A DNA stretch of 63,979 bases, filler included, from Dimorphilus gyrociliatus (GCA_904063045.1; 4 parts of 4 records of this genome joined end to end with filler, not necessarily neighbours in it), one strand, 5' to 3'. Shown: positions 1-18,908, counted from the first letter of the whole stretch. The notes: generated from the sequence alone by a model not told the origin. Numbers and translations are program-made.

Positions 1-857
1 AATGTTATGCTTTTTTGATTGTTTTTATGTGCTACAAGCGATGCAAGCGCTCCGCCAAGCGAATGTCCAGTCAGAATTACTGGTTTTTTATATTTATCTT
101 TAACTCTCTTAAATATTTTTTCTGCATGCTTAAAATAGCCGACATCTTTATCTACTAATTTCATACAACTAAATGAACAACCAACGCTAGTTAAACAAGA
201 CTCAAGAAAAGAATATTTATTGTTACAACAAGAAAACATTAAAATCACGTTGAGTTTATCATTTTCGGTTGTTGCACCACCCAATTCTATATTAGTTCCT
301 TTAAAGGAAATCACAACAGAATTTTGGAAATTATAAACTAATGTTCTCAATCCAGGTAAATTATACCCTATTTTCTCAATTAAACTAGGTTCATCTCTAC
401 CAGAGTAGTTATTTTGTGCCATCAACAATAACTTTAACATTTCATTTTTTTGTTTAGATTCCATATTATTCCATTCTAAGTCTTCTGTTTTACTAACTTT
501 CTTCTTTTGATTAAAAAACACTGAATAGTCAAAAATTCCAGGTACATTTATAGTATTATAAGAATCTTCACTTATAAAATTTTCTAAACTCTGGAATTCT
601 AATGGATTATTATTAGACTTAAAAAGATTACCTCCAAGTTTTGATGTATCCATTGGAGTTTTACTGTCGTTTGAAACACTTTTATCTTTCTTAGTTATAT
701 CATAAGATTTTTTTAAAGTATTTTTGGTTTGTTTCTCTAAAAAATTGTCAATTTTAGCACCTTTAGAAGACATGTCAAATGTGTCAAAAACAGGCTTAAT
801 AATAACAAATTCTTGTATTTTATAAGTAAAAAATAATTCCAAGAATAGAACCAACAT
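1..857 (-). CDS. ATG15: ATG15-like lipase (class 3 lipase fold), 3'-partial, runs off the window start
   Basis: Manual translation, absent from the ORF track because no stop lies in the window. Hydrophobic N-terminus MLVLFLELFFTY from the ATG at 857, then ISFKGTNIELGGATTENDKLNVILMFSCC and the lipase motif VILTGHSLGGALASL (GHSLGG at 51-68). Confidence 0.8.
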   Translation of the reverse strand, partial: MLVLFLELFFTYKIQEFVIIKPVFDTFDMSSKGAKIDNFLEKQTKNTLKKSYDITKKDKSVSNDSKTPMDTSKLGGNLFKSNNNPLEFQSLENFISEDSYNTINVPGIFDYSVFFNQKKKVSKTEDLEWNNMESKQKNEMLKLLLMAQNNYSGRDEPSLIEKIGYNLPGLRTLVYNFQNSVVISFKGTNIELGGATTENDKLNVILMFSCCNNKYSFLESCLTSVGCSFSCMKLVDKDVGYFKHAEKIFKRVKDKYKKPVILTGHSLGGALASLVAHKNNQKSIT

Positions 858-910
858 ATACCATTTAATAAAAACTTCGTCTTATAAAAGTTGTTTTAAA
901 AATAAAACCT

Positions 911-1393
911 TTAATTATCAATCACTTTGTACTGATCTTCCTTGTCCTGTTGTTTTTTCTTAAAATCAACAACTACACTATGAACTGTCTTAGAAATTCT
1001 TCTTGTTGTTTCACAAACTGTAACACTATCACCTGGCTGAACAAGACCAAAGAAACATGGTGAAAGATGGACACTAACCTTTTTTATTCTTCTCTCATAT
1101 CTTTTATATTTAGAGTTGTAGTGAAGTCTTTTTTTTATAACAACAATGGTACGTGGTTGTTTCATCTTTAGCACTTCAGCTTGAAATAGTCTATTTTTTA
1201 AATTAATTTCTCCTGTAAATGGACATTTTTTATCAATGTATGTTCCATTCATAGCAGCATCTGGTATTTTGATATTATGACCAATGTCTCTAAAAAATCT
1301 TTTCTTCTTTTTCAAATCATCTTTTTCATAAGGATTTATGAATACTTTTTTCTGTTGTGGATATGTTTTATACCTTTCTAAATGTTCTGCCAT
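911..1393 (-). CDS. RPS11: 40S ribosomal protein S11 (uS17)
   Basis: YIDKKCPFTG, KMKQPRTIVV, YNSKYKRYERR and VHLSPCF are eukaryotic S11 motifs; intronless. Confidence 0.97.
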   Translation of the reverse strand: MAEHLERYKTYPQQKKVFINPYEKDDLKKKKRFFRDIGHNIKIPDAAMNGTYIDKKCPFTGEINLKNRLFQAEVLKMKQPRTIVVIKKRLHYNSKYKRYERRIKKVSVHLSPCFFGLVQPGDSVTVCETTRRISKTVHSVVVDFKKKQQDKEDQYKVIDN

Positions 1394-1394
1394 T

Positions 1395-1398
1395 GGGG
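1395..1398 (-). promoter_or_regulatory. Microsporidian-type CCC motif upstream of the RPS11 ATG
   Basis: Minus strand reads TTTTTACCCC-A-ATG. Confidence 0.7.
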
Positions 1399-1554
1399 TA
1401 AAAATTTTTAGAATAATTTTAAAAAGAAAATAATTTTCAAAATTTAGGTTAAAAGTACTATTGGTCTAGTAAAAAGCTATATAATATAAATTCATATTAT
1501 GTTAGGTTTAAATTAAATGGAATTGATATGTTTTTATAAGGTTTTTAATGTTGA

Positions 1555-1736
1555 TAATTATAACAAAGTTTTAACTTGAATTTTCATATCTAAAACACAA
1601 ATTTTATGTTTTAATAGACTTCTATAATAATATTTAAATATTATCTAATTATAACAAAGTTTTAACTTGAATTTTCATATCTAAAACACAAATTTTATGT
1701 TTTAATAGACTTCTATAATAATATTTAAATATTATC
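1555..1736. repeat. Perfect tandem duplication, 2 x 91 bp
   Basis: 1555-1645 and 1646-1736 are identical (taattataacaaagttttaac...aaatattatc). Confidence 0.9.
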
Positions 1737-2257
1737 AATTGATAAATTTCATTAAAAATTTGATAAATTTCTAATTATTTGAACTATAAAATAAGTGATA
1801 TCTCTTTGTAATTTACTTATTATAGTTAAATCTATCATTTATACAAAATAGGTTAGGTTTTTTTTCTAACTTTCTAGCTATTCAAATATGACAAATAACT
1901 TATTTATTTATAAAAAGTAGATAAAATAAAATATTTAATCTCTGTGATTAAGAAAAATATTTTTATTTTTATCAAATATAAAATTTATATATTTTACACC
2001 GTCAAATATAACATTGAAAGCAATTAATTAAAAAACTTTTAACTTCTATAAAAAAGTATATAAATAAATATTATAAACAGATGTTTAGGTGATATAATTT
2101 AATATGACTATAGAATTGTTCTTAAAAAACATTTTATGAATTAAATCATATTTTTAAAACCAAAAAATTTTGTGAAGACTGTCAAAATAATTAAGTATGA
2201 AAATTGTTTTTAATTTTAAATATAAAGTCGTATCAAAAGTACAAGAGATTAAGAAAA

Positions 2258-2710
2258 ATGTTCTTCTATCCTATAATTTCAATTTCGCATACTATTAAAA
2301 AAGGAAACTTGTTCAATATGATGTCAGAAGGAAGTGGTATAGTTTGTATAAAAAACAATATTTTAAATATACTAAATAAAAAAGACGTAACTGAACATAA
2401 AAATTGTGAGATTAGTTTAATTGAAACTACAGATGGATTTTTATTCAAGGTAAATAGATATTTTATATGCTCGGGTGCACGTTCTGAATATATTTACCCA
2501 TGTGTAGATTATCATGATAAGATGTTCTGGGATGTTGAGATAGAGAAAAAAAATCTTATAATAAAACAAAACAGTAAATGTTTAACATTTGATGAGAGCT
2601 TTAACAGAGCCATTAGTAGAAAAGAAATTAGTTTAGTCTTAAAAAAATGTGAAATAGATAATAATAACAATAAATGGAGAGGATTAGGTGATATTTTTAA
2701 TTTAATTTAA
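2258..2710 (+). CDS. Small microsporidian protein, possibly ricin-B-lectin-like (beta-trefoil)
   Basis: The ORF-track start is non-ATG; the first ATG is at 2258 (MFFYPIISIS, hydrophobic). Cys/Trp spacing FIC..YPC..FW and KCLT..LKKC..NNKW resembles ricin-B repeats. Confidence 0.45.
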   Translation: MFFYPIISISHTIKKGNLFNMMSEGSGIVCIKNNILNILNKKDVTEHKNCEISLIETTDGFLFKVNRYFICSGARSEYIYPCVDYHDKMFWDVEIEKKNLIIKQNSKCLTFDESFNRAISRKEISLVLKKCEIDNNNNKWRGLGDIFNLI

Positions 2711-2806
2711 AAAAGGTATTATTTAAAGGATAAGACTATTTATTTTTAGTAAATTTAATATATGATATAAATTATGAATAATTAGATTAAAATGTATGTT
2801 TTTTAT

Positions 2807-3733
2807 TTAAGAAGTAGGAAGGTTGTTGAAATAAGATACTGAAAGTATAGGAATTACTAAGTTATCATTCATATTTGTACTATACTCTAAAATACTAACA
2901 ATTAGATAAAATAAAACTTCTGAGAAATCTTTAAAAATTAAATAATGTACACAAACTCCCACAATGAACCCCACAATGAACCCCACAAAAGCCCCATAAA
3001 TGGTTTTTGTATTTGATTTGAGATAAACTCCAGTAAAAGAAGCAAAGCTATCCAAAAAGCAAACAGCTATCAAATTGCTTATTTGATGTTTTTTAACTAA
3101 ATAAATCTGTGGAATTAATAATGAATATAATAAAATAACATGAGAAAACACATGATTTGTATTTTCTTTTTTATTCCTAAGAAGATTCTCTAATTCTGAA
3201 ATATCAAGGTTTAAAGTACAGCAATTGAAAAATAGTGCTACGAAAAACATAGTATTTTCTACTCTATTTTCTATTATGAGAAATACAAAAAATAAAAAAA
3301 AATGAATTATTTTTCTGCGTAAATTTTTTTCTAATATTTTAAAATAGATTAATAAAATAATAATAATAAACAAATATAAACACAAAAATAGTATTCTTAT
3401 GTTTGAAATCACTTCATTAAAAATAGTAATCAAGCTATTTAAACTGTTATTCCATAAAAAAAACTGATTACCTAAATATAATAAAAAATCACTAAAATGT
3501 CTTTTTTTGTAATTAAAATGGTATATAGAACTTATAAAAACACCCTTATTTTTGACTTTATGAATTAATCTTTCCATAATTAAAGATAATAAAATTGCTT
3601 CATTATATGTAAATGATGATATATTATAAGTAAAATATAAAAGGTTTGCTAGAAAAAAGACTATTCTTATAATTTTTGTATTCTTTAAGCTTTCTAAAAT
3701 TAGACATAAAATTATTGTATCATCTGAATTCAT
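2807..3733 (-). CDS. Dolichol kinase (SEC59) / CTP-dependent polyprenol kinase-like membrane protein
   Basis: Polytopic; C-terminal DSFASFTG..KTIYG..ILE..DNLVIP matches the CTP_transf_1 kinase pattern. The ATG at 3733 is preferred because CCC lies 5 nt upstream. Confidence 0.75.
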   Translation of the reverse strand: MNSDDTIILCLILESLKNTKIIRIVFFLANLLYFTYNISSFTYNEAILLSLIMERLIHKVKNKGVFISSIYHFNYKKRHFSDFLLYLGNQFFLWNNSLNSLITIFNEVISNIRILFLCLYLFIIIILLIYFKILEKNLRRKIIHFFLFFVFLIIENRVENTMFFVALFFNCCTLNLDISELENLLRNKKENTNHVFSHVILLYSLLIPQIYLVKKHQISNLIAVCFLDSFASFTGVYLKSNTKTIYGAFVGFIVGFIVGVCVHYLIFKDFSEVLFYLIVSILEYSTNMNDNLVIPILSVSYFNNLPTS

Positions 3734-3738
3734 TACAA

Positions 3739-3741
3739 GGG
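3739..3741 (-). promoter_or_regulatory. CCC motif upstream of the dolichol-kinase-like ATG
   Basis: Minus strand reads AAAAATACCC-TTGTA-ATG. Confidence 0.55.
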
Positions 3742-4438
3742 TATTTTTATAGGTATATTTGTATATAGACAATAAATCTATTAATGGTAAAAGATTATTC
3801 AATTGATATAAGCTTATTTTTATAGAACACTAGTCAATGTAATTTTTATTTGTATGAGTTTATTTTATTGTATTGTTTTTTAAAGTATTTTGTAATTTTG
3901 AATATTTTTATTTATAAATATAAATTTTGTAAATAGTTTATCAATGTTAGGGTCAGTATAACCATCTTAATTAGAAACCTATACAGTTTTATATAAATGA
4001 AATATTCATAATATTCTATTTTAAATTTTGCCAAAAATAGAAGTTTATATTTACATATACAATATTATATTACTTAAATCAAAATAGGCAAAAAAAATAC
4101 TTTTTTATAATATACTATAATGCTTATTCAATATTTTCTTAAACTTTTATACATTAAATTATAATATTTGGTAAAATAATAAATATCAAAGTCTATGCTA
4201 ATGTAATATTCAATTAATTTCTTATTATTTGTATTTAAAAATATCTACTATTTAAGCTATAAAATATCTAGTATCGTTTAATAAGACTAAAAATCTAATC
4301 TGAATATAAAAAATTAAATTTTACAATTCAAAGTTCTATTCTAATAATGGTAAAAGTTATTTCCAAAAAAATTAATTTTAATATATTAAATTAAAACAAA
4401 AATTTTACTGTAATTTTTATTATTAGTTGTAAAAATCA

Positions 4439-4441
4439 CCC
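4439..4441 (+). promoter_or_regulatory. CCC motif upstream of the Swi5-like ATG
   Basis: AAAAATCACCC-TTTG-ATG. Confidence 0.55.
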
Positions 4442-4445
4442 TTTG

Positions 4446-4799
4446 ATGATTTTTAATAATTGGGATAAAGAAAAAATAATTTTTAAAAAAAATATTAAAA
4501 GCTTTGAATATTTAGAAAACAATGGTTTAATAGAAGAATTAAAAGACAACTATTATTACCTTAAAATATCAAATTTTGAACTAGATGAAATCTGGTATAA
4601 AGAAAAGTGTAAAGAGATTTTGGATGATCTAAAAATAGAAGATGTTGATAAGAAAATAAACAATTATATAAATGATATTAACCAATATAACCTTTTAAAA
4701 GACATATCTCAAGAACTAATGGGGAAAATAGCTGAAATGAGAGGTGTTACAAATAAAAAAATACATGAAGAATTAGATGTACTAAGTGATAGTGAATGA
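4446..4799 (+). CDS. SWI5: Swi5/Sae3-like DNA recombination mediator
   Basis: C-terminal YINDINQYNLLKDISQELMGKIAEMRGVT matches the Swi5 pattern YN-x-x-KD-x-x-Q-x-L-x-G-x-IA-x-x-RG. Confidence 0.7.
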   Translation: MIFNNWDKEKIIFKKNIKSFEYLENNGLIEELKDNYYYLKISNFELDEIWYKEKCKEILDDLKIEDVDKKINNYINDINQYNLLKDISQELMGKIAEMRGVTNKKIHEELDVLSDSE

Positions 4800-5179
4800 A
4801 ATTATTGTATTATACTTCAGTTTAAACTATAAACTAATCTATACTTAATAAAATTTTAATTAAATTATAACATAGAATTAATCTGTATTATTTATTATAG
4901 AATATATTAATTAATTAAACGAATTGCTGTATTTTGAATTAAAATATTCTTTTTATATATAAATTTAATATTATAATTAATTAGCATATTTTATAATACT
5001 CCAAAAAATAAGGTACAGGAGTCAATTTAAATACAACTGAATTTAAAAAAAGTTAAAACTACAGAATTTTGTAAATAATACTAGTAAGCATAGCACATGC
5101 TTTAAAAACAGGCGGTAATATTGAATAAATAAACTATTGAAGATAAATATTAAAAAAAAACAAAGTACATGCTTTACAG

Positions 5180-6300
5180 AGGCGCTAAGTCGTATTTTTA
5201 AAGATTTAAGATTTTGATTTCTAATCTAATTTTGTATTTTATATTAAATTATAAAGGACTACTAAATAAATCTATATAAATATTTTTTTAAATAAACAAA
5301 TAACTCTAATTTTAAATTATAAAAATTAAATTACTTTAAAAAAAATAATAATTCAATAAAGAATTTTTAATATAAAACATTAACTTTTTTTATATAAATT
5401 CGATAGAAGGTCGTATTAAAGGTTCCAAGAAAGTACCACTTATGAAGTTAGTAATGAATAACGTAGAGAAATAGTCTTTGAACTGATGAGGAATCCCACG
5501 ATTGTTTACGTTTTATAATAGAAAGATGGGGGGTTTTATTTGAAAAAAGTTGTGGGAGGTATAAAAAATCTACAGATTTAATAAGAAAGCCTGATTTATA
5601 GAAGTAAGCTTGCGTTGTAAAAGCCATAGCTGTCTTAAAAGGAGTTCTATTAAAAGAAATCACTCTTTTTATGTATAAAATTATATTTAGTGAAAATTAT
5701 AAAAACAATTTATAAAATAACAAAAAAAATTAAACTGATAAGCATATGTGATGAAATACAAGTGAATAAAGCAACTTTTATCGATATAAAATACTTATCA
5801 TTGTCTATATTGAAAAAAATAGCTAAGTTTTCGTATAGGTAGTATCAAAATAGAAAGTGATGAATGTTTACTCTCAAAACGCAAATACCAGAAGGGTAGA
5901 ATAACAAAAACGTATCTGTTGTGGGAGTTGCTTTTAGAACTACGAAAAGCCCCCTTTTTTACTTTAACAAAGATGGGAATTGCTGATAGATTAAAAAAAA
6001 GTCATAAAATTAGAGTAAAACGAAAATAATGACTTATATATAAAAAGGTCATAATTGCATTTAATCACTTAACATGAAACGTTTGAAAATAAATCATAAA
6101 AATTAACGACAATTAGTAGAAAACAAACAGAAACATTTAGAATATTTCATTAAAGACAGAGAGTCTATTATTAAAAAAATTGTATCCCTGAGAATTATTT
6201 TATGGATATAGCTATATATTCATCAATAAAAGGACACTTTTCCAACTATTTGAATTTTTTTCACATTTTTTTGGATTTCTTAACATGACTATTTAGCATA
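5180..6300 (+). mobile_element. Degenerate Merlin / ISXO2(IS1595)-like DNA transposon
   Basis: 5835-5903 translates IGSIKIESDECLLSKRKYQKGRI (compare VEIDES..KRKYNRGR). After a frameshift VSVVGVAFRTTKSPLF follows, later INHKN; many stops. Boundaries are approximate. Confidence 0.55.
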
Positions 6301-7051
6301 AATTCTATTTCAAACTGCTCAAAATAGATTTCTGAAGAATATTGTTTTTGAAAATTGCAGAAATAGTATTAATGTTACTAATTATATTTTACTGTTTGAA
6401 ATATTTACTTTTTTGTATAATCATATAAGCTTAAAAGTTTTATCATTAGGTTAAAACTGATATTTATTTAGCCATTTATATTCAATTAAAATATATTTGT
6501 AGATTTATATATTATTTAACTATTGATATGATATATTTAAAGTTTCTTTTTGTATTAAATAATAATAATAATAATAATAATAGAAATAATTAAAATCTAT
6601 TTTTGATGGATAAAGTATACTTTTTATTAATATTTGTATTTGATAGAATGTAATTGTTTAAATGTTTAATTAATTTATTTATATTATGTTGATTATAAGT
6701 AAATTTTATATTTGTCTAAAAAAATATAATATATATTATAAACTTGATGAATAAATAAGGATTTATATAAATTCTTAACATTGCTTGAATTTGATATATT
6801 AATTCTAAATGTTAATATTTCTAATTTTTTAAATTGAGATAAAGTTTTTTTTTAAACTTAACGATTCTTTTTTTAAAAGAGTACCTTAGGTTAAGGTATT
6901 AGTTTACACTTTTAAATTAAAATATTAAAACTTGTAAAATATTATTGAAAAATAGCCAAATTGTTGTTGTTATGTAAGGGGAAAAGACTATCAGTGTTTA
7001 TTTAATCGGGAAAACACCACCTGATGGAGGAGTTTTTTACTATTAAACATA

Positions 7052-8563
7052 CACTATCCCCCCCCAAAAAAAAGTGGTCGATTAAAAAAATCACGTTTTT
7101 CGATGTATAAATAACCTTATAAAAATAAACAAATATTAACAAATGCATCTTTCTTCATCTACTATTTATCACCAAAATAGTTGGTTCTATAAAACAATAT
7201 TAAGCATTAAATCATACTTTTATTTAATAAAAAAAAATTTATGCCAAAAAAAAAGTGGTCGAATTTATTTGATCCCTTGTTAGTCTCTCTTTAGCTCGGT
7301 ATAATGTTTTAGATCTTCTTGGCATAGACTCCACAAGCTTTTTACACAGCTTAGTAGGTGTGTTATCCAATATATCATTCAGTTTAATCTATAACTTATT
7401 TTTGTTTTTAATTGTTGTTCCTTGAAATTTACGCTTTATATAAGCCCAGAGATGTTCTACAGGGTTCATATAAGGTGATATGGATGGCCAAGGCAATACA
7501 TTTATTTTATTTTCTTTAAAGAATTCGGTTGCTAACCTTGATGTATGCTTAGGATCATTGTCCTGCTGGAAGATAAAACTATTAGAAAGACCCAAAATAT
7601 CCTTTGAAGTAGTCAATACTTTGGCCAATATACAAGTATATCTAATAGCATTCTTCTTTCCATCTAATAATATGAGTTTCCCAATACCTTCATATGACAT
7701 TGCACCCCAAACCATTATACTGCCTCATCCATGCTTGAAAGTTGGTATGCAATTCTTTAATTCACTATACGCCGAACAACTATGCCATACTATTACTCTA
7801 CCATCTCTTGTAAATAGGTCAAATTTACATTCATCTGTAAACATAACCTGTTTCCAAAAGCTCATTGGGTACTTAATTCACTCTCCTGCTTTATTGAATC
7901 TGTTGATATGTTTTTTTTCGTTAGGAGTAGTATTTTTTTGGTTTAATGCCCGTGTACACCTGCATCATATAAACTGTTTCTTATTGTCTGTAAACATACT
8001 TGTTTATCTGTCTTTATTTCTAACTTGTTTGCCAACTTTGCCGCTGATAACCTAGATGATTTAACAACTTCTGAAATAATAAAATCTCTATCTGTATCAT
8101 TAAGAGACCTTTGTCTTCCAGAGCCCATTTTTCTTTTTATTTCACCTGCATCCCTATATATTTTTAAAATTTTGGTGACTGTTAACTTTCCTATTCCTGT
8201 TTTTTCTGAAATTTTTGACATGGAACCCCCTTGCTTAAAAAGGGAAATAATCTCTCCTGACATTAAAGAAGTAATTTTGTTATAGATAAGGGGAATTTGA
8301 GATAATAATTTATATATATACCAATAATTTTCCCTTCAAATTGTCTGATTTTTTAAACTGACCACTTTCTTTTTGGCATAATTTTTTTTTATTAAGTAAA
8401 AGTATGATTTAATGCTTAATATTGTTTTATAGAACCAACTATTTTGGTAATAAATAGTAGATGAAGAAAGAAGCATTTGTTAATATTTGTTTATTTTTAT
8501 AAGGTTATTTATATATCGAAAAACGTGATTTTTTAATCGACCACTTTTTTTTGGGGGATAGTG
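7052..8563 (-). mobile_element. Tc1-family (DD34E) transposon, full length, transposase disrupted
   Basis: TA flanks at 7050-51 and 8564-65; about 210-bp TIRs starting CACTATCCCC with an internal AAAAAAAGTGGTC repeat. HTH ORF at 7943-8263; catalytic ORF at 7389-7715 with FQQDNDPKH...WPSISPYMNPVE (34-residue spacing). Confidence 0.95.
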
Positions 8564-9036
8564 TATTTATTTAACTGCTAAAACAGGTTATGTCACTGAA
8601 AAAATTAGATAAAATAAAAGAAAATAGGATATAAAAACATTCTCTATATTCTATTAAAAAGGTGTCAAAATTAACAAAATATAATCATGTGATAAGTTTA
8701 ATAGAATTTAACCACTTTATTCTTATCATGTGAGGCCAATAACTAAAAGAAAATATATACAGGGGATAAAGTTTCTTATAATAGCTTGTCTAGTAATTTA
8801 CTTATAATTATTTTTAGTAGTCGAAATTTGTCCTATTATAATGATTGAATTAGGTTGTGTATTTTAAGCTGGTTATATATCTTCTAAATAAAAAAATTAC
8901 CTTCCTTTTTAAGTATTTTTGGACCACAAAATACTTGATCTTTTAAGAGAATATGTCTTAAATAGTAGTGCAATTTTTTTAGAGTTATTTTTAAAAATTT
9001 TATAAAATTTATGAGATTTTTATCTAATAAAATTTA

Positions 9037-9039
9037 CCC
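9037..9039 (+). promoter_or_regulatory. CCC motif upstream of the chromodomain-gene ATG
   Basis: AATTTACCC-TTCA-ATG; supports a start at 9044 rather than 9011. Confidence 0.55.
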
Positions 9040-9043
9040 TTCA

Positions 9044-10690
9044 ATGTTAATATCAAAAATAAAAAGGATCACTGGTTTAAAGAAAATAAATGAAAATATA
9101 TTTGCATTGGTTTATTGGGAAGATAGAAATTGCTCTTGGGAAGACATTAAAGATATCAACTGCCCACTACTTCTACATAATTTTTTTACTAAATGTCAAA
9201 GAATACAAGAACAATTTAAAGAAAGGGATGAAATGAAAAAAAAAAGAGAACAAAGAAATTCGATGTTTCTGGATTTAAAGAAAACTCAAAAAAAGGTAGA
9301 AAACACATCAGTCGAGTCTATACAAGAATTAAAAGAAGCAAGGTCTTTCATTTCACATAGTACCATTCAAGTAAATAAATCACGTATCGAACAGAAAGAA
9401 AGCTCTATTCGTGATAAAAGAAGAAAAATAAATGAGAAATTTTTAAATGACAGACGATATTTCGAAGGAGCTCCAATTAATAAGCCGATACTTGATACAT
9501 TACCTAGACCAATTTATAAAAAAGAGTATAGACCAGAATTTGAAGAAAACGTTATGATCTATGAATATAAAGGCAGACCTATTACTAGATTTCAATGTAG
9601 TTCTGTTTTTTCATCTGGTATTACTACCCCCAAAAAATTCAAACATAGGCAGACATTGAATATTGAAATCGTTAAAAATTTGTTCTTTAGTTTAAGACAA
9701 AGTCGTGACTTTGATCAAGTTGGAATATTTAAATTAAAAAAGATTGATGGGGATATTGGTCATGAAAGAATATTCGAGTCTGTGTTAAGTGCTAAATATG
9801 CTATTATTGATCATTCTTACAAAGGTACCTCATTGATTTGTACTGCAATTGAAGAATTTGAGCCATATTATATCAATGGTATTTATAACTATGTCTTCAT
9901 TCCTATAGAATGTATAGATCTACGTTTTTTATGTAAAGAATCTCTTGATTTAGATAAATATCATGCTAGTTCATGGAAGACATACTTGCCTAGTTACCAA
10001 ACGTTTATTGAACAACAGGCTCTATTTTTTAGCAATCTTTCTGTGAATACTAAAGCAAGGTTTTCAATAGTTTCGGGGTCTTGTGATTTAATTTCTAACT
10101 ACCTACAAAAACATTTAATGGTCTTGGATTGTATACAGGTATCATTATCTACAACAGATGTTGACTATGTTTTCATTTGTGAAAAGCAGTTAAAATTTTT
10201 CACGAAAACAGAGATTTTTGAAAGTTTGATTACCACCAAATGTCGTTTTTTTATTTATAATATGCATAGAATTTTAAAAAAAGAAAATGTTTTTTATGAG
10301 GTTTATCAAGAAGGCGGCATATTTGTTCCATCGCAGTCGCTTTTAGAAAATCCGGATATTCCTTATGCTTTTGATTTAATCCAATATTGTAGTAATAATG
10401 ATAAAAAATGGAAAGTTATGGTACCAAAAGAAGTTATTATTTTTTTAAGAAATAAAATAAACTCGTTTAAGGGGTCTATTATACAGCAAGGTTATATACA
10501 TTTAACTAATATTTTAAACAAACATATTATTGATTTTTCACAAGATAAAATAGATGACTATCTCAAAGAAATTATCAATAAAAATTTAATTACTCATCGA
10601 TTTTTCTATATTATCGATGATATTAAAGAACCAACTCAACATAGAATATCTCCAAGTGACGCCTTGAATCTTTATATAAAAAAATTTTAA
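9044..10690 (+). CDS. Chromodomain-like protein with a large uncharacterised C-terminal region
   Basis: Long intact ORF. N-terminal IKRITG..ALVYWEDRNCSWEDIKDINCPLLLHNF resembles the chromodomain LVKW..TWE pattern, followed by a charged coiled region. Confidence 0.6.
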   Translation: MLISKIKRITGLKKINENIFALVYWEDRNCSWEDIKDINCPLLLHNFFTKCQRIQEQFKERDEMKKKREQRNSMFLDLKKTQKKVENTSVESIQELKEARSFISHSTIQVNKSRIEQKESSIRDKRRKINEKFLNDRRYFEGAPINKPILDTLPRPIYKKEYRPEFEENVMIYEYKGRPITRFQCSSVFSSGITTPKKFKHRQTLNIEIVKNLFFSLRQSRDFDQVGIFKLKKIDGDIGHERIFESVLSAKYAIIDHSYKGTSLICTAIEEFEPYYINGIYNYVFIPIECIDLRFLCKESLDLDKYHASSWKTYLPSYQTFIEQQALFFSNLSVNTKARFSIVSGSCDLISNYLQKHLMVLDCIQVSLSTTDVDYVFICEKQLKFFTKTEIFESLITTKCRFFIYNMHRILKKENVFYEVYQEGGIFVPSQSLLENPDIPYAFDLIQYCSNNDKKWKVMVPKEVIIFLRNKINSFKGSIIQQGYIHLTNILNKHIIDFSQDKIDDYLKEIINKNLITHRFFYIIDDIKEPTQHRISPSDALNLYIKKF

Positions 10691-11855
10691 ATATCTATAA
10701 ATAAAGAATAAAATATAATAACATCTATTTTTATATAAATATATATACGCTGTACCTTAAAAAATATGGTCTTCCATATTTTTGTAACTTGTATACAATT
10801 TCGTTTGTTTTATCAAAATTGAATATATACCAAAATTTTTATAATTATCTACTGAACCTTCTATGCGGGGGTCTAGTCTATTTCAATACCATTTTTAAAT
10901 ATTTTTATCTAAAAACTTTAAAAAGAGTAATTTTCATTATATATTTAATAGTATAACCATTCTTTTTACCGATGAAATAAAAACGCTTTTTTTAAATATA
11001 AATGCTGACTTTTAGCAGATTCGTAGCTTTAAATATCTCTATTTCGCGCTCTAGCAGCTATTAATTTATCCCTTTTTAAAAGTTTTAATTTTTTATTTTG
11101 ACCTTGATTATTGAACAGAAATTCTCGATAAGACTAAATTCTAGAATTAGTTTTAGGATAGCATTATTATTATTATATAAGTTTACTTGTATGTTAAGGA
11201 ATATTATCTTATAAGAAATAAAAGTGACTTCTAACTTTAGAAGCTGATATTAATAAACTAAAATTTAGTATATTAAAGTAATACGTTCTATACATTTTTA
11301 AATTTCTAATTACATTCTTACAGAAATATGATATCAAAATCCCCGCATACTAATACTGCCCTACCTAAACTTTAATGTATTCCAAAATTTTCGAATTTAT
11401 CTGATTTCCTGAAAACGATTAATTGGTAAAATTTGCATTGCCCCTTTAAAACCAAGTTATATTGAACTGTAATGGTCTTAACACACAAAGAGCGCAATGA
11501 GAAAACAATGTTTAGTAAAAGTTTTCTGTCATATTTGATGGATTTAAACATACTAAAAAACAAAAATGTAAAATACAGCCGTATTTTAAACGAACCAAAA
11601 TACTAGAGAAGGTTTTATTTGGTCTTTTAAATCAAAAAAATGTAATGAAGGTTAATTCTTTATTCGTGCTCAGTCTATTTTCCTAGAATCAAGGTCCTGT
11701 TTATAAAATCGTTTTTATTATTTATAAATGGCGTTTCAAGACCAACTCTTAAACTCTTTAAGAAAATCCACCCCCAATCATAAATAATTTATTACAGTTT
11801 TAGGTTTAATAAGACGATCCTATAATTAAAAAACTAATAAAATCGATTGGTCGAT

Positions 11856-13660
11856 GGAAAAGTGATTGAAATAGACGAAAATTTACCCAGCAAGTAAAGA
11901 GATGATTAAAATAATTATAGGGTGGAGGTATATACACTAGTGGTCAAAAAAAACTGAAATTTTCAAAAATCCGATTTAGGTGGTTAATTGAGATGATGGA
12001 AGTTAAAAACATAAACATCATATAATAGTAATAAATTTCATACTTTTAAATCAAAACTTTATACAATTTTTTTACATTTTTTTCATAAAATTATAATTTT
12101 TTTTAGAAACCTTGACAAAAAAAACTGGAATTTTTATTTTATAAGTAAATAGAAATTTTCCCCTCCACATCAATATATAAACCACCTTATTATATCCCTT
12201 ATTATGGGAAGACACCTATCTGACTCTGAAAAAGGTAAGATTTTGGGCTTAAGAGAAGCTGGATTATCGTGAAGAAAATAGGAGAAAATCTCAACAGACC
12301 GACTTCAACGATATCCTTATTCATCAAAATTATTTTGAAAGGAATAGTATTGAGAGGAAGCTAGGTTCTGGCCGGAGAAGGTTTTTAAATAAAGGTTCGA
12401 TCACTAAAATCAAAAACTTGGTGATGTCAAATCCAAAAATCTCCTCAAAAGATATAGTTAAAAAATCCAGTAGATGTTTCACCAGGACAGTTAGAAGAAG
12501 CCTAAATGCAGTTGAATTTTTGGACGAGTGGCTGCAAAAAGCCCTTTTTGACAAAAAAAATAAGGTTCTTAGATTAAACTGGGCATACAAGTATATTAAT
12601 TACAATGAAGAAGACTGGAATAAGGTAATTTGGAGCGATGAAAGTAGATTTAAGCTCTTTGGATCCTATGGAAGACAATATGTATGGAGAACAGTTAATT
12701 AAAGGCTAGAAAAAAGAAATTTACGACCTACTTTTAAGTTTGGAGGTGGAAGTATTATGGCGTGGGGGTGTTTTTACGGTAAAACCCTTGGGAAACTTGT
12801 TTTTATAGATGGGAAACTAAATTCCATAGACTATATAGATCTTATTAGTAAAAATCTGTATGATTCCATGTCAGATAAAAGTGTTTCAGGGTACATTTTC
12901 CAACAGGATAATGCACCATGTCATGTTTCTAAAAAAAGTATGGACTATTTTAGAGAAAATAAGGTTGAATTAATGAACTGGCCACCACAATCACCGGATT
13001 TATATCCGATAGAGAATGTATGGGCATTTATCAAAAAAGAAATAGTAAAATCTCCACCAAAAAATATGAAAGAACTAAAGAGGCTAATAGAAAAAATTTG
13101 GCAAGAAATCCCTCAAAATTTTTTAAAAAAACTAATAGATGGTATGCATAATAGATGTTTAGAAGTTATTAGGGCGAATGGCGGTCATATAAGATATTAA
13201 CCAAAGAGTAAAATCGAATTCCAGTTTTTTTTGACCATTTTTTTTACTTTTATTTTTTTTTCATCAAAATAACATAAAAAACCTTTAAATACTATTGTAA
13301 AAAATATTTATTTGTATTTATATAAACTTAAACCATTTTAATTTGTCTTTGGTTTTTTGTATTTACATCAAAAAACAATATAAAAAAAATTCCAGTTTTT
13401 TTTGACCACTAGTGTATAGAATAAAAAGAGTGTGTTTTCCCAAAATTTTCAAGAAAAAAATAGACAATCTCTTGATAAAATCATCATAGATAATTTTAAA
13501 GAATATTCAATAATTATATAAGATGAATGGAAAGGCTATTGTAATATAAAATAATAATAAGTATGCTATTTTACATTAAAACATAAAACTGAGTTTTTTA
13601 GGTAAAGAAACAAAGGAAGTTCATACTCAAAATATTGAAAACCAATAAAAATGGCTTACA
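11856..13660 (+). mobile_element. Degenerate Merlin/ISXO2-like transposase interrupted by a Tc1 insertion
   Basis: GKVIEIDENL at 11856-11885 precedes the Tc1. After it come KIIIDNFKEYSIII*DEWKGYCNI and ETKEVHTQNIE (about 13480-13640), collinear with Merlin motifs VEIDE / ISDxWKAY / HTQxIE. Confidence 0.65.
11935..13414 (+). mobile_element. Tc1-family (DD34E) transposon, full length, transposase disrupted
   Basis: TA flanks at 11933-34 and 13415-16; termini CACTAGTGGTCAAAAAAAACTG and its reverse complement, with inner repeats near 12112 and 13220. Transposase starts at ATG 12204 (MGRHLSDSEKG) and includes IWSDESRF and FQQDNAPCH..WPPQSPDLYPIE; frameshift near 12270, TAA at 12700-12702. Confidence 0.95.
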
Positions 13661-15698
13661 ATATGCCTTAAATCACGAGGATGATATAAATGTAATCTTA
13701 AAGATCATATCAATGATTATTTTTTTCTAAAAAAAGAGAATCCTTTTTTGGAAATTATTAACTGGATGAAAGTTCTCGTAATAAAAAATGGTTATAAAAT
13801 CTCGTCAGTTTATTTTTTACGTGATTTTAAGGGCTAAAATAAAAACTTTGCTGCTATTGAGCAACCCCCCTTTTAAAGCAGTTGGAATAAAATTGGATGA
13901 CAGAAGAACTTCAATGGAAAATTATATAAAATTTTATACTAACTAAGTTTCGCAAAAAAACTTAAATTTATGAGAATTAATAAAAATAGATAATATATCT
14001 AGAGATAAATCTGTGTAAATATTTATAGGCAAAATCACATGTTTATCTCAAAAAATACTGTTGTCTGTTCTTTAAACTTTAATATCTTAATAGACCATAT
14101 ATTTATTCTATATTAAAACAATAAAATGATTATTATTTGAACTTCCAACTGTATTTTTACATTTTTAAACAAAAATTAAAGATTCTAAAATACTGCCATA
14201 TATATATTTCCTGGGAAAACATTAGTAATTCTTTTTCTATTGAAATATATTAATTAGTTTAAACTCATTAATTCCTATATAATTAGATAAATAATTATAC
14301 TATTTGATAAAATAATGTGTCAAAGTTTTATAAACATAAATTAAGATAAGAACTACTGCTACAGTGTCTTTACATAAATATAATGGCTAATATTAGGTTT
14401 TTATAAAGTATAAATAAATTTGAAATATTAATGCTCAATTGTAAAGTTTAAAAATAAATCCAGAGTATATGATATGATTTGCTATAAAATATATACTCAT
14501 AATATTCTAAGGTATAATTAAAACATACCCCTACAATACAAATCATTGAATTTATTGTTTTACCAATAAATAATTTTATAATTCTCTAAAATTTAAACTC
14601 AACTTTCTGCTAAAAATTATTATAAAACTCATTTTTTAGATTCAAAACTCAACTTTGTAATAATTTTTAATAAATAGTTTAAAAATCATCATAAACTATG
14701 GTTTTCCCTCCATTTCCTATTTTATACATTAAAACATGATTGAGTAATTTAAAATTTCCATAAAAGCTTAAACTATTTTTGTAGTATTGTAAACTTTTAT
14801 TTTGTATTTTTTTGGATCAATTTTATTGGTTGATAATTACAACTATTATTAGATAGATGAAAATGTTTATTCTATTATAAACTTGAAAAGTTATTGTTAA
14901 GAAATACTAAACAATAACGTTAGGTTTAAGTTTGGTTAGTAAACTGAAATAACAGCTACAAATATATATTTTGATATGAAAATGATCTAAAAGGTTACAG
15001 AAAAAGACTTACTTGTTAATTTTTTAAATATTATAATAAGAAAAGAATTTATTCAAAAAATACAATTACTTAATCAAGAAAGTTAATAAAAAAATTAAAA
15101 AATAAAAAATTTATATTCAATAAATAAATAAATACTTAAAAAAATACAATTACTTAATCAATAATATTTAACAATAAAATCTGTATAAATAGATTATATA
15201 ATAACTAGAGTGTGTTTTATTAATTTAATATTTGAGTATAAAATGAAATATTAAAATATAATTGGATTTATCTTTATTGAAGAATAGATTTTATACTCTT
15301 TTTTTATATCTATAATTGAATTTAAAGGATTACAAAATTTAAAATATAAAATTCAAATAAATAGAATTTATTTAAGCATTTGTTTTAATAAATAATATAA
15401 ATTTTTATTAAAATATATATCTCTAAGGTGTTTACCATAAATAATAAAAAAAGCTATTTTTTTTTAAATTAAACCATTTTAATTTTAATGACGTGTTAAA
15501 ACTCCTAAAATGATTCGAAATTCAATTTAAAGAATAATTTTATTTAATTAAATTTAACAAATTATTTCCATACTTTGCTGATTATATTTTACCAATTAAG
15601 TAAGTTGAAGTTTCCATTTTAATTAGTGAAAAATCAGTAATAGAGAAAAACCAAATGAGTTCTTGAGAATAAAAAAAGTTCAACATCACTTTTAATGA

Positions 15699-16136
15699 TT
15701 ATCGACTGAGCTCAGGTGTTGCTCTTGCATCCCTTGATCTGAGTTTTTTAACAAGAAGAATGTCTTTTTCCATAACTGTAACTCTTTTGGCATGGTTGGC
15801 AGCTAAATTAGCATCCTCGAATAGACCAACAAGATATGACTCTAGGGATTCGTGCAATGCATTCAAAGCATGAGACTGGAAACGTGCATCGGATTTTAAG
15901 TCATTAGTTAAATTTCTACACATTCTTTGGAAAGGTAATTTTCTGATCAAAAGTTCTGTAGATTTTTGGTACCTTCGGATTTCTTTAAGAGCAACAATCC
16001 CTGGTCTGAATCTTGGTTTCTTTGCTCCAGTAGATTGAGATGGTACTGCAGACTTTCTTGCTGCTTTGGTTGCTAGTTGTTTACGTGGTGCTTTTCCTCC
16101 TGTAGATTTTCTTGCTGTTTGTTTTGTTCGAGCCAT
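15699..16136 (-). CDS. H3: Histone H3, divergent microsporidian type
   Basis: [28 protein letters not shown] tail and intact histone fold; divergent [17 protein letters not shown] segment and a C-terminal LRSR extension. Confidence 0.98.
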
Positions 16137-16140
16137 ATGA

Positions 16141-16144
16141 GGGG
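16141..16144 (-). promoter_or_regulatory. CCC motif upstream of the histone H3 ATG
   Basis: Minus strand reads CACTTACCCC-TCAT-ATG. Confidence 0.7.
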
Positions 16145-17873
16145 TAAGTGTAAAGATTTTTTTATATTTGCAACAGGAGGTGAAACACAGTGATTCTAAT
16201 TGGTGTTTTTTTTGGAATTTTCTTTTAGAAAGAACTTCAAAAAGTTTTTCAAAAAAAAAGTATTTTTAGTTTTTTAATTATCCAAAATTTTAATTTTCCA
16301 TTATAAATCTTTACTTCCAGAAACGGAAGTTTTAAATTTATTCAAAGACCTACATTTTTAGTTATTATATTATTCAAATCATGTTTTAATCTGTTTTATA
16401 ATAAATATTTTATATAAAACAATTGATAACTAATAATAATCTATGCAATAAATAAACTATTTAATTTTAACTTTACTTAGAATATTTAAATAAACTTATT
16501 CTCTTTTAGTCAACTTTACTTAGAATATTCAAATAAACTATTTAGTGTCTTATTAATATTTTATATTTAAACAAAAAATTAAAAAATAGATAAATTTTAT
16601 TTTTGTAAGAAACTACTGGTAATTGTTTAATTAATATAAAAATATGTATTATTCTGTTAAAAAATAAACTTTATATAAAGAATCGATTGATACTTTGAAA
16701 CTACTAAATAATAAAAAAATATAAATCAAAGTACTTGAAAATACATAAGTTATAACTTTAGGAAAATCTTATAAATTAGACTAAAAGTAATAAACAAATA
16801 ACTGAGAATATCTAATAAGAATTCTTATTATTTAACTCAAGAAAAACTACTTTTAGAGATTTTTAATAGAAATAAAAATTACTCATAATAGAGAGTGTTT
16901 GACTAAAATATCAAATTTAGTTTAATTAAATAAAATAGTAAATTATTATTTTCTAGAATTCCAATCTACGTTTTTTTTAAATACTACCTTTTTTATTATC
17001 ATTAAAAAAAGATATATTAATATATAATTAATGTTGTGACTAAAAGCCCCTTTTTTTGGTATTTTTGTTAAAGAGGTGTTTATATCAAATCTAGTTATAT
17101 AAGATAATAAAACACTTTTATTCTTTCGAATTATTTGATTATATTGTTTAAAAACTGAGTACTAAATAAGAATGTCACAGAAGTAGTCATTTATCAAAAC
17201 CTAAACCTTTTATTTTGGTATATGATAAATAAAATATTGGCATATTAAACATGCATACATTAATCTAATTATCAGAGAGGTTAAATATTAAGAACTAAAA
17301 AATAGTAACTTAACAAGTGGGAAATTTGGCTATATAAATAAATTTAATATTTTTTAAAGAAAGTAATTAAACTTAAATAGTCAACTTATTAAAAATTGTG
17401 TAATACTAACTTATTATTAATACTTTATATTTGTATATAGAGAGAAATCTGGAATGTTGACATAATTATTGATTTTAAAAGGAAAATCGTATTATAATGT
17501 TCGTTAAAATATGAAAAAATAAACTGTCAAGTAATTTATATATAATAATTACATATTGATTAAAAAGATTCTCGTTAAATTAGAAAAATTCATTTATAGC
17601 TCAAATGGGACTAAAATACATATAAAAGAATCCAATAATATTTATTTTAAATACAACATAAATTTTAATATATGCAATTTAAGTAAGAAAAACTTATAAA
17701 TACAAAAAATATTTTTGAAGTTTAGAGTAGTTTATATTGAGGCTTGATGCAGTTTTATGTATAAGCAAATAGAGAACTACGGTTATAAATTTCAAAATGA
17801 TGTTGTACATCATTACAAAGTACCATTTTTTTGTTTTTTTTTTACTTCTGAAAGCAATTTTTACCAATCTGTT

Positions 17874-17900
17874 TTTGTACAAGATAACGATCCTAAGCAT
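17874..17900 (+). mobile_element. Highly degenerate Tc1 transposase fragment
   Basis: FVQDNDPKH motif in an otherwise stop-rich frame; no TIRs found. Confidence 0.35.
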
Positions 17901-18908
17901 ATTATTAAATTAAAGAAGAATTTCTAACAGTCAATAGCATTTAAATTGAGAGTTAGCTTTTTTAATTTTTTATTTTAATTGAATCGAAAGTAAAAAGTGA
18001 ATCTATCGAATATAGAAAGATTGCTATACACTTAGAATAGAATAGTTTCTTTTAGTGAGCTTTCTAAAAACCTAATTTATTTATAAAAAACAAATCTTCT
18101 TACCTAACAGACCAAATTAGATTCTATAAATAAATAATCTGAATATTCTTAATTTTTTACTTAAAAAATTAAAAACTAATTAATTTAATATAATGAATAT
18201 AATAATAGGTTTAATATAACATTAAAAAAACGATAAATAATTCTTTAGTTACTTTTTAATGTGCTTATTAAATTATACAATTAATCGTATTCACGTTGTC
18301 TAATATACTTTTTAAGTCTATATAAATATTTCAACTGAGCGTCTATGGTGTTTGTAACACAATTTTGTGTCTCTAATAAAATATTTGCTTTTAATAGCTA
18401 TCTAGATTTTTATATATAAATCAATATCAACTTTTAAAGTGTTAATAAACCTAAAAGATACAAAAATAATTCAAAAAAGGAAAATTTAATATTCAATTCA
18501 CATAATAAAGGAAAAGCTTTCATTAAAACTTAAAGGATTTATAAAATATAGGTGCATCCTCTGCTTGTTCTCGGCCTTAACTTCTAAGTTTATTTTTTGC
18601 ATCTATACAATTTAAAATAAAACTTCCATTTAAAAAAAAATATATGTTCTCCATTTTTAGTATTATCTTATACTGTTGTAAATAAATCGCTATTTTCATA
18701 CAGAAGAAGATTTTAGCAGAATAGCAATTTATTTAAGATTTTCTATAACATTAGTGTTTAGGTCGATGGCTCTCAGTGAAATATGACCTAAAAGGATTTT
18801 TTACAAAGAGATAGTGATTCCTTTCTAGTAGCAAATTTTTCATATTAAGTTAACATTTAGTGTAAACTTGTCTAAGTATATTAACTCGATATAATAAAAA
18901 AGTAAATT

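Follow-up and report, generated by a model that had tools for sequence, protein, structure and literature searches.

An AT-rich DNA piece with microsporidian start signals, two decayed Tc1 transposons, and a compact homologue of Chp1

Genes and composition of the piece

The DNA described here is the first piece, positions 1–18908, of a window of 63,979 nucleotides ("the window" is the whole stretch of DNA, filler included); the analysis covers these positions, and coordinates are counted from the first letter of the window. Seven intronless genes (one of them a doubtful open reading frame, ORF) and two decayed Tc1 transposons are found in the 18.9 kb. The piece is read as a nuclear-genome fragment of a classical (long-branch) microsporidian, and not of an animal, another fungus or a protist, with a probability of roughly 0.95. 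This reading, already put forward in a preliminary description of the same DNA, is adopted because five lines of evidence carry it: the tree of ribosomal protein RPS11, a protein family restricted to Microsporidia, a gene neighbourhood that recurs in Antonospora locustae, a CCC signal at the gene starts, and characters of histone H3 that are common with Hamiltosporidium. The six confidently called genes are as follows.

3–773, minus strand: class-3 lipase, 257 N-terminal codons counted from its start at 773 (Pfam Lipase_3, E 3.8e-7, passing the curated threshold).
911–1393, minus strand: ribosomal protein RPS11/uS17, 160 aa, intronless (Pfam Ribosomal_S17_N and Ribosomal_S17).
2807–3733, minus strand: dolichol-kinase-like multi-pass membrane protein, 308 aa (Atlas feature search and BLASTP).
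4446–4799, plus strand: Swi5, recombination mediator, 117 aa (Pfam Swi5, E 3e-14).
9044–10690, plus strand: Chp1-like chromodomain protein, 548 aa, the largest gene of the piece.
15699–16136, minus strand: histone H3, 145 aa, with a C-terminal extension (Pfam Histone, E 5.8e-37).

Every gene of the piece is one uninterrupted frame (ORF listing and Pfam). RPS11, Swi5, and H3 are single ORFs with full-length Pfam matches, in agreement with the intronless genes of the preliminary description, and four further genes or ORFs are added to them here. The compactness noted there is that of the genes and does not extend to the contig: the genes are short and intronless, yet the contig itself is not gene-dense, with coding sequence making up only about 24% of it, transposons 16%, and non-coding DNA about 60%. 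The content of guanine and cytosine (GC) is 23% overall, 17–31% across 1-kb windows, and about 20% in the non-coding part. No tRNA was found in a tRNA scan of the piece, and a scan against Rfam gave no match, hence no rRNA for barcoding.

Microsporidian characters of the piece

The trinucleotide CCC occurs in the 15 nt that precede the ATG for five of the six confident gene starts (RPS11, the dolichol-kinase-like gene, Swi5, the 548-aa gene, and H3), as against 14 of 533 ATGs (2.6%) on both strands (binomial P = 7e-8); the CCC-ATG motifs of the preliminary description are thus far above background. Positions below are relative to the ATG.

1394–1407, minus strand: RPS11 start signal, CCCC at −5 to −2 and AAATTT at −14 to −9.
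Dolichol-kinase-like gene, start signal: CCC at −10 to −8.
Swi5, start signal: CCC at −9 to −7.
H3, start signal: CCCC at −10 to −7.

In RPS11 and in the 548-aa gene (ATG at 9044), AAATTT is located just upstream of CCC; the start of the latter gene is placed at 9044 rather than at 9011 because CCC precedes the ATG at 9044. Microsporidian genes have been described to carry a CCC-like (or GGG-like) signal directly upstream of the start, those for ribosomal proteins having an AAATTT-like box in addition (PMC2803860), and the start signals of the piece match that description.

RPS11 was placed in a maximum-likelihood tree (LG+C20; 41 rows, 159 columns). The sequence from the piece falls within a clade of 27 microsporidian rows with support 100/100 and a branch of 1.26 substitutions per site; animals, zoopagomycetes, other fungi, and the metchnikovellid Amphiamblys are all outside this clade. 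The phylogenetic check proposed beforehand, of whether the contig would group with animals or with non-microsporidian fungi, thus came out inside Microsporidia for RPS11. Within the clade, the sequence is grouped with Cucumispora dikerogammari and two unnamed sequences (support 96/94), and on this single marker the organism would be a sister of the Cucumispora lineage. A word search of a collection of 15 billion proteins is in line with the tree: every named match among the top 26 is microsporidian, at 50–60% identity (closest named sequence, C. dikerogammari, 60%), and the non-microsporidian matches come next, at 45% identity or less.

Histone H3 shows about 72% identity in the word search to canonical H3 from every kingdom, and its score is uninformative for that reason. 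The preliminary description had reported a divergent H3 with an LRSR tail. Such a tail is present, and it is a C-terminal extension (LRSR plus nine residues in place of RGERA); Hamiltosporidium H3 has a C-terminal extension as well. In a small alignment, further derived characters are common to these two histones: loss of the histidine in KKPHR; the changes ALKEIRR, ALHE, and FEDAN. No suitably sized open frame for a paired H4 gene adjoins H3.

Four orthologues of the piece are neighbours in both genomes when it is compared with Antonospora (Paranosema) locustae, and all of them are intronless. RPS11, Swi5, RPL10, a chromodomain protein of 576 aa, and a protein of 336 aa lie within 5.2 kb on one A. 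locustae contig (L001); by BLASTP, Swi5 of the piece matches its A. locustae counterpart at 2e-20, the chromodomain protein at 1e-28, and the dolichol-kinase-like protein the 336-aa protein at 7e-23. The block formed by RPS11, Swi5, the chromodomain gene, and the dolichol-kinase-like gene takes up 9.8 kb in the piece, nearly double its A. locustae length of 5.2 kb. The two blocks differ in gene order and orientation; identities are 22–37%; RPL10 is missing from the piece, where a Tc1 element is inserted between Swi5 and the chromodomain gene.

Cucumispora dikerogammari, of which a draft genome (GCA_014805705.1) has been announced (PMC7849709), provides a second comparison. This amphipod parasite is the closest named lineage in the RPS11 tree and has likewise well-spaced genes (contig L003). 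The neighbours of RPS11 differ: diphthamide synthase, UQ_con, and TYW2 in Cucumispora; lipase, the dolichol-kinase-like gene, and Swi5 in the piece. At its opposite flank, RPS11 has UQ_con and a TYW2 methyltransferase in both A. locustae (L001, 2277–3476) and Cucumispora (L003, 10001–14205), and the lipase in the piece. Since the first two species share the UQ_con/TYW2 side and the piece has a lipase instead, the arrangement suggests a rearrangement breakpoint at RPS11 in the lineage of the piece.

The 548-aa protein has no Pfam family above threshold (the Pfam family Chromo is matched below threshold only) and no match in the word search. Scanned exhaustively with HMMER against 1.84 billion representatives, it gave 14 matches, most of them full-length (528–678 aa) and none above 26% identity. 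Ten of the 14 were looked up: seven carry an organism name and are all microsporidian (Vavraia culicis; Antonospora locustae; Hamiltosporidium; Spraguea lophii; Dictyocoela roeselum; Tubulinosema ratisbonensis), and three are Logan or JGI entries without a name.

These results bear on whether the piece could come from another AT-rich eukaryote (an early-diverging rozellid or metchnikovellid, another fungus, or a protist) with its microsporidian features acquired by convergence. H3 by itself cannot discriminate between such sources, and richness in AT and poverty in introns occur elsewhere too. In the RPS11 tree, however, the clade with 100/100 support excludes Amphiamblys, zoopagomycetes, other fungi, and animals, and convergence fails to explain either a protein family found in Microsporidia only or the conserved gene neighbourhood; such an origin is considered extremely improbable.

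The chromodomain protein family

Members of the family to which the 548-aa protein belongs are annotated merely as "Chromo domain-containing protein" (about 550–576 aa). A profile built from 15 members was compared with the sequences of the Protein Data Bank (PDB): the chain 3tix_B, C-terminal half of Schizosaccharomyces pombe Chp1, is matched at E 3.7e-5, and the N-terminus of the profile matches the chromodomains of SUV39H1, CBX5, and Rhino.

The structure of the 548-aa protein was predicted with AlphaFold (AF2) on the family alignment (mean predicted local distance difference test, pLDDT, 74.7), with residues 1–85 and 168–548 folded. Predicted domains are a chromodomain (1–62), a helix and disordered linker, a SPOC domain (about 167–294), and a PIN-like domain (about 420–547). 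A Foldseek comparison of the model with 3TIX gave E 3.9e-14. With VIA-align, 357 residues of 3tix_B were superposed at Z 18.1 (model 164–547; Chp1 515–956); the SPOC domains (167–294) gave Z 11.4 and the PIN domains (420–547) Z 9.0; residues 1–62 matched the chromodomains of Rhino and SUV39H1 at Z 8.0–8.2 (root mean square deviation 1.0–1.2).

On these profile and predicted-structure matches, the family is classed as a compact homologue of fission-yeast Chp1. Chp1 is the chromatin-binding chromodomain subunit of the RNA-induced transcriptional silencing (RITS) complex, and its SPOC and PIN-like module is the Tas3-binding core. The domain order is the same as in S. pombe Chp1 (PDB 3TIX, Chp1-Tas3 core), namely chromodomain, linker, SPOC, and PIN-like domain. 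The length differs, 960 aa in Chp1 against about 550 aa here, the long middle part of Chp1 being replaced by the helix and disordered linker.

In chromodomains of the HP1 type, a cage of three aromatic residues reads histone H3 methylated at lysine 9 (H3K9me), and the cage positions were taken from these proteins. One of the three positions is kept in the family, the tryptophan of the V-x-W strand; the family begins too near strand 1 to provide an aromatic residue at the first position, and R, K, M, or S stands three residues beyond the tryptophan. Canonical reading of H3K9me is doubtful because only this one position is conserved. The piece contains no gene for a Chp1 partner (Tas3, Argonaute).

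The species of the named family members are, we presume, ones that keep Dicer and Argonaute. No mention of a connection between Chp1 and Microsporidia was found in the literature searched, an article on structure-based annotation of Vairimorpha necatrix included. The family offers a testable handle on whether microsporidia with RNA interference (RNAi) restrain transposons by small-RNA-guided heterochromatin.

Transposons, occurrence in other data, and minor features

Both transposons belong to the Tc1 family; TIRs, terminal inverted repeats.

7052–8563, minus strand: Tc1-family (DD34E) element 1, 1512 bp; TIRs of about 195 nt (94–100% complementary), CACTA ends, TA flanks.
11935–13414, plus strand: Tc1-family (DD34E) element 2, 1480 bp; TIRs of about 30 nt, CACTA ends, TA flanks.

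In both elements, HTH_Tnp_Tc3_2 and DDE_3 are matched, with 34 residues separating the second aspartate from the glutamate, the Tc1 (DD34E) signature. They are dead copies: the transposase gene of element 1 has one frameshift and three or more in-frame stops, and that of element 2 a frameshift and an in-frame stop; part of the terminus of element 2 is repeated internally. The preliminary description had spoken of Tc1/Merlin elements. Its Tc1 part is borne out by the two elements; for Merlin, no Merlin/IS1016-type transposase was found in the 10 + 10 + 73 open frames scanned, nor any other transposase family in the 73 further open frames (of at least 38 codons).

The piece resembles the large-genome, transposon-bearing type of microsporidian. 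Genomes of the Encephalitozoon type have one gene per kb. Hamiltosporidium, Edhazardia, Dictyocoela, and Anncaliia have genomes of low GC content and low coding density with Tc1/mariner transposons, as found here; their RPS11, in contrast, is only 50–54% identical to that of the piece. Long AT-rich spacers and two dead Tc1 elements correspond to the architecture of expanded microsporidian genomes and not to the Encephalitozoon type.

Occurrence of the DNA in public sequencing runs was searched with an index of 31-nt words (31-mers), for positions 1–6000. Near-identical words were found in 16 runs from nine studies, comprising four differently labelled organisms (A–D), marine metatranscriptomes, and a marine sediment metagenome. 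Half of the words are present in one run of organism A, and 20–34% in several runs of organism B; shares of 5–19% were obtained for runs of organisms B, C, and D, for five marine metatranscriptome runs, and for the marine sediment metagenome. In RNA runs the share is 5–13%. Cucumispora is freshwater or Ponto-Caspian, whereas the sequence of the piece turns up in marine data sets.

For the protein, the nearest neighbour of RPS11 is 98% identical over 133 columns and comes from the MERC catalogue of marine eukaryote transcripts (ERR1711890_58570); we take this accession range to be that of the Tara Oceans metatranscriptomes. A scan of a metagenome-contig collection gave 435 relatives of RPS11, the best 45–51% identical and none of them from the species of the piece, and the exact RPS11 and H3 products are not on record as called genes in the NCBI, ENA, JGI, or Logan assemblies. 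Because these two products are not on record, the metagenome contigs include nothing close, and named sequences reach 60% at most, none of the sources searched contains a public annotated genome of the species. A closely related sequenced genome is lacking as well, its RPS11 being at most 60% identical to that of any sequenced species.

The source of the assembly might itself be microsporidian, or a mixed parasite sample, in which case the contig would belong to the intended target and nothing about it would be "unrecognised". It fits with this that the run with the largest word share (X1) is a small data set of 60 million letters. The absence of any named microsporidian RPS11 above 60% identity from the 15-billion-protein collection speaks against it, as do the lack of called RPS11 and H3 genes in the four assembly sources and the Chp1-like protein without a relative above 26% identity; we regard this explanation as unlikely.

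Microsporidian DNA could also have been transferred into the nuclear genome of an animal host, the piece then being an integrated fragment and not part of a living parasite. Nothing points to this directly; the preliminary description states that the source assembly also has animal contigs, and more than one run of the same labelled organism contains near-identical words, as expected of an integrated copy. An integrated fragment is nevertheless very unlikely, because the genes are intact (six to seven open genes with microsporidian start signals), the microsporidian neighbourhood is kept over 10 kb, GC is uniform at about 23% with no host-like sequence at either end, and transcripts occur in environmental RNA (the 98% identical RPS11 product in the marine metatranscriptome catalogue, and the shares in RNA runs given above). 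The sequence also occurs under four organism labels, which is a further point against integration.

Several observations weigh against the microsporidian reading or against its details. The evidence from runs and from RNA consists of k-mer shares only, and a share below 0.2 may come from close relatives or from short parts. No CCC motif precedes the lipase start or ORF168 (see below). The tree of the chromodomain family does not resolve the position of the piece (long branches), and the placement next to Cucumispora comes from a single protein of 159 columns with long branches. No small-subunit (SSU) rRNA, polar-tube, or spore-wall gene was found within the piece (Rfam, Pfam).

With the piece taken as microsporidian, the organism would live as a parasite or cobiont of animals that are marine and probably planktonic; its DNA would therefore be an unlabelled passenger in the runs of other organisms, and its mRNAs would appear in marine metatranscriptomes. 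A fuller picture, that of a first genomic view of an undescribed marine lineage, sister to the Cucumispora group and so widespread in planktonic animals that it shows up in Tara-type metatranscriptomes and in runs of four or more labelled organisms, with an expanded, transposon-bearing genome that keeps a compact Chp1-type protein, is offered tentatively and at less than even odds. On that picture, a RITS-like connection of RNAi to chromatin silencing would survive in some Microsporidia.

Should the source record carry an animal label, there is parasite DNA in it, which is to be binned out; left unbinned, such DNA could yield false "animal" genes or false claims of horizontal transfer. Because the parasite lacks a close sequenced relative, seems to be marine, and recurs across studies, public data could provide a draft genome, an SSU barcode, and the host range of a neglected plankton parasite without sequencing cost.

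Two further features were recorded between RPS11 and the dolichol-kinase-like gene.

1555–1745, no strand: tandem duplication, 91-bp unit head to tail, 2.1 copies, 98% matches, in the spacer between RPS11 and ORF168.
2315–2710, plus strand: ORF168, doubtful, about 131 aa (Pfam Ricin_B_lectin, E 0.003, below the cut-off).

ORF168 may not be a gene: its single-sequence AlphaFold model is uninformative (pLDDT 34), and it shows no similarity to the A. locustae ORF of equivalent position. At the left edge, the open frame of the lipase (3–881, minus strand) leaves the piece directly after the GHSLGG nucleophile motif. Neither Pfam nor NCBIfam gave the dolichol-kinase-like protein a match with a usable E-value; its Atlas feature score to a "Dolichol kinase" cluster, in which Microsporidia are the commonest phylum, is 0.94.

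Three spacers (4800–7050, 13415–15698, and 16137–18908; 2.2–2.8 kb each, 17–21% GC) contain no open frame with a family match and may be decayed repeats or plain spacer. In element 2 (12191–12206), CCC stands at −10 to −8 from the transposase ATG (12204), as in the genes of the host; in element 1, CCCC (8294–8297) lies about 31–34 nt upstream of the transposase ATG. This could reflect adaptation of the transposons to microsporidian start signals, or chance. The 91-bp duplication looks very recent, or is possibly an assembly artefact. Within the dolichol-kinase-like gene (2958–2988, minus strand), an exact 12-nt unit is present in 2.6 copies and encodes a repeated G-F-I-V in a predicted membrane helix.

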